A DNA stretch of 64,000 bases from Neoconidiobolus thromboides FSU 785 (taxonomy: Eukaryota > Fungi > Entomophthoromycota), in NCBI GenBank assembly GCA_025603075.1, contig MU626263.1, forward strand, positions 1-64,000. The letters run 5' to 3'. The position numbers were made by a program, and so were the translations under genes. Shown here one piece after another: positions 23,113-43,655 of the stretch. Position 1 is the first letter of the stretch; the number at the start of each line of letters is the position of its first letter. The notes below the pieces were generated by a model. It did not search any database. It saw only the letters and a program-made list of their open reading frames with translations, and had not been told where the DNA came from.

Positions 23113-25213
23113 ATGAAGTTAATAAATAGATTAAATAGAATAAACTTAATTAAAAGTATAAAGATTAATAAGAGTATCATTGGTACCCAAAATGTATTTA
23201 CAAAACTCGATTTAAACAACACTGCAAATAGAGTCTTCAATAGATCACTTCATTCTTCAATCTTCAATTTCAATTCAGCGGCTGAGGCTGTTAAAGCGGA
23301 TGAATTAAATACTAAAGTCGAAGATATGTTTTCACAAGAAAAAATTAGAAACTTAGCTATTATAGGTATTATATTATTAATTTAATTTGACTTTTCTTAT
23401 TTCTTGATTAGCTCATGTTGATCATGGTAAAACCACCTTAGTAGATTGTTTATTAAAGCAATCTGGTACTTTATCCACTATTCAAAGCGGCGGCACAAGA
23501 GTCATGGATAACAACGAATTAGAAAGAGAGAGAGGAATTACCATCTTATCAAAATGTACAAGTTTAGTTTATAAAGGTAACAGAATTAACATTGTCGATA
23601 CCCCTGGGCACGCCGATTTTGGGGGTGAAGTAGAGAGAATCTTAACTATGGTAGACGGAGTAGTATTGATTGTTGATGCTACTGAAGGTCCAATGGCACA
23701 AACTAAGTTCGTTTTACAAAAGGCTTTAAAGAGAGGTTTAAAGCCATTAGTAGTTTTTAATAAAGTTGATAGACCTACTTCCAGACCCGAAGAAGTAGAT
23801 TCCGAGTTATTGGACCTCTTCTCTTTGTTAGGAGCTAACGATGACCAACTTGATTATCCAATTTTATATGCTTCAGCCAAAGAAGGATGGGCTACCAAAG
23901 ATATTGGCGGTGACAAATCAGATGGAATGAAGCCTCTTTTAGATACCTTTTTAGAATTTATACCAAAGCCCGAAGGTGATAGAAGTGCACCATTTAAAAT
24001 GCTTGTTACACAACTAGAGTCAAACACATTCTTAGGAAAATGCTATCTTGGTCGTATTAATAGTGGTAAAATTAAGGTTGGAGATCCTATTCGTTCTTTA
24101 AACGAAGAAGGAAAAGTAGTCGAAGAGAATAGAATTACTAAAATCTTTTTACAAGTTGGGTTAGAAAAAATTGTAGTGGAAGAAGCTGGTGCCGGTGATA
24201 TCGTATCTATTGCTGGTATCACTAATGCTGGTGTTAATACTACTTTATGTGATCCAAATATCGATACTCCATTACCTAGTCATAAAGTAGATCCACCAAC
24301 TGTTTCTATGGTGTTCTCAGTTAATAACTCCCCCTTAGCTGGTACCGAAGGCAAGCTATTGACATCAACAGTCATTGGAAATAGATTATTGAAAGAAGCT
24401 GAAACAAACGTTGCGCTTCAAATTGTTTCACAAGGATCATCTAGCTTTGAAGTACGTGGAAGAGGTGAACTTCAATTAGGTGTTTTAATTGAAACAATGA
24501 GAAGAGAAGGTTTTGAATTAGGTATTTCTCCACCAAGGGTAGTGTTCCAAAGAGGCGAGAAAAAAGACGATATCCTTGAGCCAATCGAAGAAGTAACAAT
24601 TGATGTAGAACATGAATTTACTGGAATAGTAATTGAGAAATTGTCTAAACGTAAAGGGGAGCTTAAATCCTTCATTGAATTTGGGGATAAAGCAAGATTA
24701 ATTTTACATGTTCCTACTAGAGGATTATTAGGTTATTCTGCTGAATTTAAGAATGACACTCATGGTCAAGGTACTTTAAATCACATTTTTTACGAATATC
24801 AGAGCTATAAGGGACCTTTGGATAAAATACGTAAAGGAAGTTTATTATCGACTGCTAAAGGAGAGGTAACTTCCTATGCAGCTAACTTAATGGAACCAAG
24901 AGGTAAATTATTTGTAACACCAGGTATGCAAGTATACCCTGGTATGGTTGTTGGAGAATACAATAAAGATGACGGAGATTTAGAAGTTAACCCAGCAAGA
25001 ACTAAAGCAGTAAACAATATGCGTACTGTAATGAAAGATGAGAATATTAAACTTACAGCGGTAAAACCAATGAGTTTGGAAGAGGTAATTGCTTATGTTG
25101 CCCCTGATGAAATTATTGAAGTAACACCCAAATCAATCCGATTAAGAAAGAAAGAGCTTGATCCATCTAAAAGAAAACAAGCAGCCAAACAATTACTATC
25201 TCAATTTATGTGA
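23113..25213 (+). CDS. typA: TypA/BipA translational GTPase with probable mitochondrial presequence (intron 23366-23411)
   Basis: IRNLAIIAHVDHGKTT after splicing, ERERGITI, DTPGHADFGGEVER, NKVD, GRGELQLGVLIETMRREG. Confidence 0.95.
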
Positions 25214-40793: not shown

Positions 40794-43452
40794 ATGTCCC
40801 GCCATAGAGATGTACGTAATTTAGATATTGACGGTAAGTTAAAATGATAAAGAAGTAAAATATAAAATATAAAAGATGATTAATTAGTTAATTTTTTTAG
40901 AAATATTAGAGGAAGATGATTACTATGATGAAGAAGTACCTGCGTTGAGTGCAGAAGATGAGGGTAAGTTAGTTCTTTATAATTAACTAATACCAATCGA
41001 ATAGACTGTACTAATCCCCTTTTTTCCCTTTTTTATAAAAGGTAAAATGCGGTTAGGAGTGGAGTCTGTTTATACCATATTAGGAGAGGATGTTGAATTA
41101 AATAGAGATATCATTGAAGAAACGTTATGGTATTATTATTTTGATATTGAGGCTTCGGTAGATTATTTGCTAAGTAAGTTATTCTTGAACTGGATAAATG
41201 AAAGCTTTTTGGATGATTGATTGATTTGTTTTTTTACAGAGGAAATATCGAATAAAAAAAAACAAGACAAGAAAAAGGAAAATAAAGGTAAGGGCTTCAT
41301 TGTTAGATGAGCGGGCTGTAACGGTTTCTAACAATAAATAGTAAAAGTAGAAATAAAACCAAAAGTAGTAAAGAAAGAAGTTAAAAAAGAAGATAAAGGG
41401 ATAACGAAAGGTAAGAATAAGATTTAAACTATTGTATAATGAATTTACTTATTTAATTCAAACAGAGCAGAAATCTTCCAAAAATAAAGTATCCCAATTA
41501 GAGATGGATTTATCAGCAATGAATTTAGATACATCCGAAATAAAACGACCCGTATCACCACCCGTGATAAATAAAAAAATTAATGTTATTAACGAGTTTA
41601 AGAAAAGAGATATCCAAAAACCAAACATTAATTTAGTTATAGTAGGTAAATATATAAGCAACATTATTATTTAATACAATAAATTTATAATTTAATGTTT
41701 TATTGATTTATTTTAATTAAATAGGTCATGTAGATAGCGGTAAATCAACTTTAATGGGACATATACTTTATCAAGTAGGTAAAGTAGATGAAAGAACTAT
41801 GAAAAAATATCCTTTTTGTTGTTATTAATTATGATATATAATATATATTTAATCCTTAACCTTAACTTACATTTGAAAGAGAAAGTGAAAAATTAGGCAA
41901 AAAATCGTTTGCTTATGCTTGGGTGTTGGACGAAACAAGTGAGGAAAGAGAAAGGTAATGATAAATTAATAAATTAATGAAAAAATTCAGCAAATTTGAT
42001 TTTTAATATGATTCTAAATAGAGGTGTTACTGTTGATATAGCGACCTCTGAGTTTACGACAGAAAATCGTCATTTTACTATCTTGGATGCACCGGGTCAT
42101 CAAGATTTTATACCTAATATGATATCAGGAGCTGCACAGGTTAGATCATATTAATTAAGATTATAAGAAAAACTTAATATAATTGAATTAAATATAGGCT
42201 GATGCAGCTATTTTGGTTATAAATTCATCTCAAGGAGAATTCGAAACTGGGTTTTCTAAAGGTGGGCAAACTAAAGAACATGCTTTATTAATAAGATCAT
42301 TAGGGGTCAAACAAGTAGTTATTGCAGTCAATAAGTTGGATATGGTAAGCATTTATTAGTAGCTGAATATGTTGTTAGTAATATGCTAATTTTGATTCTA
42401 ATAGTGTGACTGGGATGAAGGAAGATATCAAGATATAGTAGCAAAATTAATGGAATTTATGACACAAGCAGGGTTTAATCCAAAAAGCTTAACATTTATA
42501 CCAATATCTGGGCTAAAAGGAGACAATCTAGTTAATTCGATTAAAAATAGGCAGCATCCATTAAACTTATGGTATAAAGGCCCACCTTTATTGGATGTTA
42601 TTGGTAATTCATTATAATATATAGTTAGTATATTAATAATACAATTATAACTAACGCAATATACTTTACTTTATTTTATATAAATAGATAAATTCCAACC
42701 TCCAAGTCGACCAATTGAATTGCCTTTACGTATACCTGTAGCTGATTTTTTTAAAGGTGGATTAGGTAGTAGTTCAGGTGTTACTGTATCTGGCAGAATT
42801 GTACAAGGTAATGTACAAATTGGTGACATATTATATGCTTTACCAGGGGATGAAAAAGGTGTTGTTAAGGTTATTGAGATTAATGATAATCCAGTTCCTT
42901 GGGCTGTAGCTGGAGATTCTGTAAGCGTTACGTTAGGGAATATTGATTTGGTTCAATTTAGGTAGGATTTGCTATATTAATATAATTGTATGACGTAATA
43001 GTTAATATATTGTACTGTATTAGATCTGGGACTGTTTTATGCCCGCAAGATTCCATAATCTCCACTACCAATGTTTTTTTAGCACAAATATTAACTTTTG
43101 ATACTAATGTACCAATTACCAATGGTTATCCAATTATTATCCATTATCAAAGTTTAAATATTAGCGGTTATATTACTAAATTAGTTAATCTTTTGGATAA
43201 ATCTACGGGAGAAATAATTAAAAACAATCCAAGGCATTTACCAAGGAATTCAACAGCTACTGTACAAATTAAAACAGATACAGTGTTGGCTATTGAACCG
43301 TTTAATCAATGTAAAGAACTAGGTAGAATTGCTTTGAGAAATTCAGGTAATACAATTGCAACAGGAATTGTTTTAAAGGTAAGGGTTTTTTTGAATTAAT
43401 TAGTTTGAGTTGCTTATTGATGTTTATCTAGGTCTTACCACAGATAATTTAA
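40794..43452 (+). CDS. HBS1: HBS1 translational GTPase, multi-exon, one AT-AC intron
   Basis: MSRHRDVRN start, [57 protein letters not shown]. Confidence 0.95.
41807..41870 (+). other. U12-type (minor spliceosome) AT-AC intron in HBS1
   Basis: 5' ATATCCTTTT, branch TCCTTAAC at 41853-41860, 3' AC; removal gives in-frame [13 protein letters not shown]. Confidence 0.93.
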
Positions 43453-43655
43453 TTGTAATTGAATTAATAATAAAAGGCTTATGTTTATTATTATATGCTT
43501 TATTTATACTCTAGTTAGTTTTGGTGTGCTTACTTGAAAATTTAAAAATACTCAAATGATTTATTAAAATAAAATAAAACAAATACTTGACACGATAATC
43601 TTGATATTCTTTTATTATAATTTAATTTAATATTAAAATAAGGGTGCTCCTAAGT

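Follow-up and report, generated by a model that had tools for sequence, protein, structure and literature searches.

HBS1 is a ribosome-rescue gene, and its product HBS1/HBS1L is the translational GTPase that partners Dom34/Pelota. In the insect-associated fungus Neoconidiobolus thromboides FSU 785 (Entomophthoromycotina), the gene lies at 40794-43452 on the forward strand of the window analysed here, a stretch of 64,000 nt (positions 1 to 64,000 of contig MU626263.1, assembly GCA_025603075.1), and a 64-nt segment inside it begins with AT and ends in AC. Is this segment a U12-type intron, what does it say about the minor spliceosome of this fungus, and how old is it? In Rhizophagus irregularis, Larue & Roy (NAR, 2023) found 205 minor introns together with minor-specific proteins and the complete set of four minor snRNAs; they counted 249 minor introns in Basidiobolus meristosporus and none in Dikarya (PMC10639083). 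Both minor introns and minor snRNAs are on record for Basidiobolus and further early-diverging fungi (PMC10639083, PMC11347168). Neither Neoconidiobolus nor Conidiobolus is named in the text of Larue & Roy (PMC10639083) or in the papers found by our literature search, which returned nothing relevant on an HBS1L minor intron or on a minor spliceosome or U12 in Conidiobolus. The initial annotation of this locus nevertheless implied more novelty than there is, given that minor introns and minor snRNAs of Zoopagomycota are already published, and our results leave unchanged the known picture, in which Dikarya have lost the minor spliceosome and several early-diverging lineages of fungi retain it.

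Gene model

The RNA-supported model of the gene has 14 exons and 13 introns and encodes 603 aa, with start and end positions identical to those of the deposited gene. All junctions from the exon 4/5 join through the last intron are present in RNA contigs, with the exon 4/5 join supported by a loose contig end that reads exon 4 sequence. The exon translations match Pfam HBS1_N PF08938 (1.1e-11), PF00009 (GTP_EFTU), PF03144 (domain 2) and PF22594/PF03143 (domain 3), which is the HBS1/HBS1L order of HBS1_N followed by an eEF1A-like GTPase, domain 2 and domain 3, and the best homologs of the gene product carry the name HBS1-like. The segment in question is intron 7. Exon 7 (41725-41806), delimited by RNA pieces, encodes (G) plus 26 residues and ends with bases 1 and 2 of a Lys codon, and exon 8 (41871-41954) contributes base 3 of that codon and then 27 residues. 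In a protein alignment against Lichtheimia, Linnemannia and a Logan HBS1 the two exons abut with no gap.

Splicing signals of intron 7

Intron 7 (41807-41870, forward strand, 64 nt) has a G+C content of 17%, splits the Lys codon in phase 2 and reads ATATCCTTTTTGTTG...AATCCTTAACCTTAACTTAC. Its 5' splice site, ATATCCTTT (41807-41815), fits the U12 pattern /RTATCCTTT and agrees at 9 of 9 positions with the established U12 AT-AC consensus. The branch-point sequence TCCTTAAC (41853-41860), the predicted site of U12 pairing, leaves 10 nt on its 3' side. The likely branch adenosine is at 41858 or 41859, 11-12 nt from the 3' end of the intron, the second of the two lying 11 nt from the last base. This corresponds to TCCTTRAY at roughly 10-20 nt from the 3' splice site, and the CTTAACTTAC that follows forms no polypyrimidine tract before the terminal AC (41869-41870), which is read from both the sequence and the RNA contigs. 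An overlapping second copy of the motif, CCTTAAC (41860-41866), stands 4 nt from the intron end and is probably too near it to act as a branch site.

Classical AT-AC U12 introns of animals and plants have the form /ATATCCTTT ... TTCCTTAAC ... AC, usually with 10-15 nt from branch to 3' splice site. The N. thromboides intron shares their 5' site, their core branch site (8 of 8 positions) and a branch-to-3' distance in the usual range, but differs from them in being very short and very AT-rich.

Joining 41806 to 41871 restores the conserved peptide ...RTMK-K-FERE... in the GTPase region, while retention of the intron gives ...MKKYPFCCY*, with an in-frame stop. Four GT-AG alternatives avoid a stop, and each deletes residues that align gap-free to Lichtheimia, Linnemannia and another HBS1. 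The initial annotation had described the 64-nt segment with its ATATCCTTT start, its TCCTTAAC 10 nt from the end and its AC terminus, the peptide restored by its removal, the stop created by its retention and the conserved residues lost to GT-AG alternatives. Re-reading and translating the sequence bears out each of these points, the last of them for all four stop-free alternatives.

The 5' motif alone carries little weight in a window of 26% G+C. The 8-mer RTATCCTT is found 7 times against 8.2 expected, with no excess over chance, and one could therefore take the U12-signal match for a coincidence and the gene for a pseudogene or one read by frameshifting. The combined pattern of the 5' motif and a branch-site motif 25-55 nt downstream, in contrast, occurs once in the window against an expectation of 0.02. 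Moreover, HBS1 is expressed and fully spliced and the site is conserved in orthologs (see below), and the RNA junctions already contradict a chance match or a pseudogene, to which we assign a negligible probability. When both strands were scanned with relaxed criteria, no further convincing U12-type candidate emerged from the window, so that intron 7 stands, as first claimed, as the only one found there. One minus-strand pair near 53845-53790, ATATCCTATC with TCCTTGAC 47 nt later, was judged to be a chance match; the sequence there does not look coding.

RNA evidence

Eight RNA runs were compared, in the form of assembled contigs and not of raw split reads. The predicted joint of 41806 to 41871, with AT..AC ends, is present in contigs of X1, X2, X3 and X5, which belong to two studies, along with eight GT-AG joints that flank it, and a second contig mapping at 80% likeness adds X4 and X7. 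Excision exactly at the AT and the AC is thus seen at the contig level in six public runs from three studies. For X2, X3 and X5, the 10 exonic bases in the bin over the intron account exactly for its depth, which means that none of the mapped contigs covers the intron in those three runs. None of the in-frame GT-AG alternative junctions occurs in the RNA contigs. These contigs provide direct transcript evidence that N. thromboides splices U12-type introns.

One low-depth contig of X1 (depth 11 versus 762) joins 41803 to 41876 instead, which skips 72 nt with AA..TG ends and breaks the frame. Short A-rich matches flank both ends of this joint and 3 letters fit either side, and we regard it as most probably artefactual or the product of rare mis-splicing.

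The HBS1 contig of X7 (third study, organism D, 2021) is 2,622 nt long and carries 4-19 base differences in each exon piece, for the most part transitions. The AT..AC joint and every other joint recur in this diverged transcript. This second HBS1 transcript (41042-43478 in the two runs) is also found in X4 (organism B), beside a near-identical one, with all intron junctions in common. It may come from a related strain or species, from a diverged haplotype or from a mixed culture.

Deposited annotation

The deposited model, K502DRAFT_334134, does not contain the AT-AC intron. It has a GT-AG intron at 41818-41896 (forward strand) that is without RNA support and that reproduces the deposited peptide ...MKKYPFCKKSF.... 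By alignment, the deposited protein has 575 aa against 603 aa for the RNA-supported one, YPFC stands where the conserved FERESEKLG belongs, and nine conserved residues of the GTPase domain are lost.

It could be argued that this GT-AG model, being GenBank's own, is the true mRNA and that the AT-AC junction is an artefact of assembly or reverse transcription, the more so as the junction has an ambiguity between its two sides, albeit of 2 nt only. The 41817/41897 joint that the deposited model requires is, however, found in the contigs of 0 of 8 runs, compared with six runs and three studies for 41806/41871, and the nine residues that it drops can be aligned across fungi. The same AT-AC junction is also needed in Basidiobolus and Syncephalis, whose deposited HBS1 proteins hold the conserved peptide that is missing from the deposited protein of Neoconidiobolus. 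We consider an artefactual AT-AC junction highly improbable.

The deposited annotation has swapped the AT-AC intron for a nearby GT-AG pair and as a result encodes a damaged protein, which is the kind of error that the initial annotation had anticipated from standard gene predictors. The practical value of the finding is the correction of this public gene model. It also means that surveys that classify annotated introns only will undercount minor introns in genomes annotated like that of N. thromboides.

Elsewhere in the gene, K502DRAFT_334134 skips exon 5 (41342-41410, 23 aa), which in the RNA contigs is joined to exon 4 sequence and to exon 6.

Orthologous loci

Genomic loci were compared for eleven HBS1 orthologs, ten of which yielded the homologous peptide. 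Three of these ten have an AT-AC intron at the site called in the initial annotation: B. meristosporus CBS 931.73 (K493DRAFT_285504; 68 nt, ATATCCTTGC...TCTTTAAC 11 nt from the end...AC), B. ranarum (71 nt, ATATCCTTTT...TCTTTAAC...AC) and Syncephalis fuscata (75 nt, ATATCCTTGT...TTCTTAAT...AC). All three introns split the Lys codon that is split in N. thromboides, and likewise in phase 2. The seven other taxa, Coemansia sp., Tieghemiomyces parasiticus, Phycomyces blakesleeanus, Rhizophagus irregularis, Gigaspora margarita, Spizellomyces punctatus and the brachiopod Lingula anatina, have no intron at the Lys site. HBS1 sequences from close Entomophthorales (Conidiobolus coronatus, Entomophthora) were not among the best 120 homologs.

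All four introns begin with ATATCCTT and finish with AC, and the branch-like motifs of the three relatives lie 11-17 nt from the end. Judged by eye, their interiors are not evidently similar, and the G+C content varies between 17% and 40%, which indicates that the splicing signals alone are conserved. The Basidiobolus intron resembles that of N. thromboides in gene, Lys codon, phase 2, ATATCCTT start, the 11-nt distance of the branch motif from the end, the AC terminus and a similar length, whereas its branch motif is TCTTTAAC rather than TCCTTAAC and its interior is unrelated and G+C-richer. As the Basidiobolus HBS1 intron is correctly annotated, it has probably been catalogued already. Two subphyla of Zoopagomycota have thus preserved one particular minor intron at an identical codon.

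Splicing machinery

The splicing signals, the restored frame, the exact AT..AC junction in RNA and the presence of such an AT-AC intron at this codon in three further Zoopagomycota all agree with the U12-type assignment of the initial annotation. Based on these four lines of evidence, 41807-41870 is with high probability a genuine U12-type AT-AC spliceosomal intron of HBS1 that is excised exactly at ATATCC...TTAC.

An AT-AC intron could in principle be removed by the major (U2-dependent) machinery or by a hybrid one, in which case it would say nothing about a minor spliceosome. U2-type AT-AC introns do exist, and minor-like introns are possibly spliced without the full set of minor snRNAs in some lineages (Olthof et al., NAR, 2024, PMC11347168). 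In HBS1 intron 7, the 5' ATATCCTTT with the branch TCCTTAAC 11 nt from the 3' end is a U12 signature and not an ATAAGT-like U2-type AT-AC site, and a polypyrimidine tract is absent after the branch site. The U12 signals are conserved in four orthologous introns in spite of their dissimilar interiors, and the remaining 12 introns of the gene (53-84 nt) are all GT-AG, eight of them beginning with GTAAG or GTAAA. Removal by major or hybrid machinery is therefore very unlikely.

With removal by the minor spliceosome, the established course of minor splicing would apply to this intron as follows. U11 would pair with ATATCCTT at the 5' site and U12 with TCCTTAAC, bulging a branch adenosine at about 41859. 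The U4atac/U6atac.U5 particle would then enter, with U6atac taking over the 5' site from U11, and the AC 11 nt downstream of the branch adenosine would serve as the 3' site. Given the accurate splicing of the intron and the literature on related fungi, it is reasonable to infer that N. thromboides keeps working U11/U12 machinery. Neither at the gathering threshold nor at E<=1 did Rfam searches detect genes for U11, U12, U4atac or U6atac within the 64-kb window. The same Rfam analysis gave a sub-threshold match to the histone 3' stem-loop at 23717-23770 (20.2 bits against a gathering threshold of 34, E=0.67), which lies inside a long ORF and is probably noise.

Intron 7 has the intron class and consensus signals of the catalogued minor introns of early-diverging fungi, and, being in phase 2, it shares their tendency to avoid phase 0. 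The intron is real, but an ordinary representative of an already known kind.

Age and origin

Among the small sample of taxa compared, the intron is present in Entomophthoromycotina and Zoopagomycotina, and Kickxellomycotina, Mucoromycota, a chytrid and the animal Lingula lack one at the Lys site. Rhizophagus and Gigaspora have an HBS1 without an intron at this site, unlike N. thromboides, and the position is likewise not common to Lingula, the sole animal compared and an intron-conservative one. The pattern of presence and absence fits either an old intron that has been lost many times or a gain in the stem of Zoopagomycota.

A stem gain, as opposed to a relic of the last eukaryotic common ancestor, requires one gain and one loss, which in this small sample is fewer events than four or more independent losses. 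Gain of minor introns is regarded as very rare, and we consider a stem gain possible but rather unlikely. If true, it would be a datable shared event, and an informative one given that rarity. In the reconstruction of Larue & Roy 2023, ancestral minor-intron density in Zoopagomycota is low, which is puzzling given the richness of Basidiobolus (PMC10639083).

The next intron downstream, which adjoins exon 8 on its other side (41955-42021), is a GT-AG intron in phase 2 after EERER. Its position is common to Basidiobolus, Syncephalis, Tieghemiomyces, Rhizophagus, Gigaspora, Phycomyces and Spizellomyces, and nearly so to Lingula; it is an old major-type intron.
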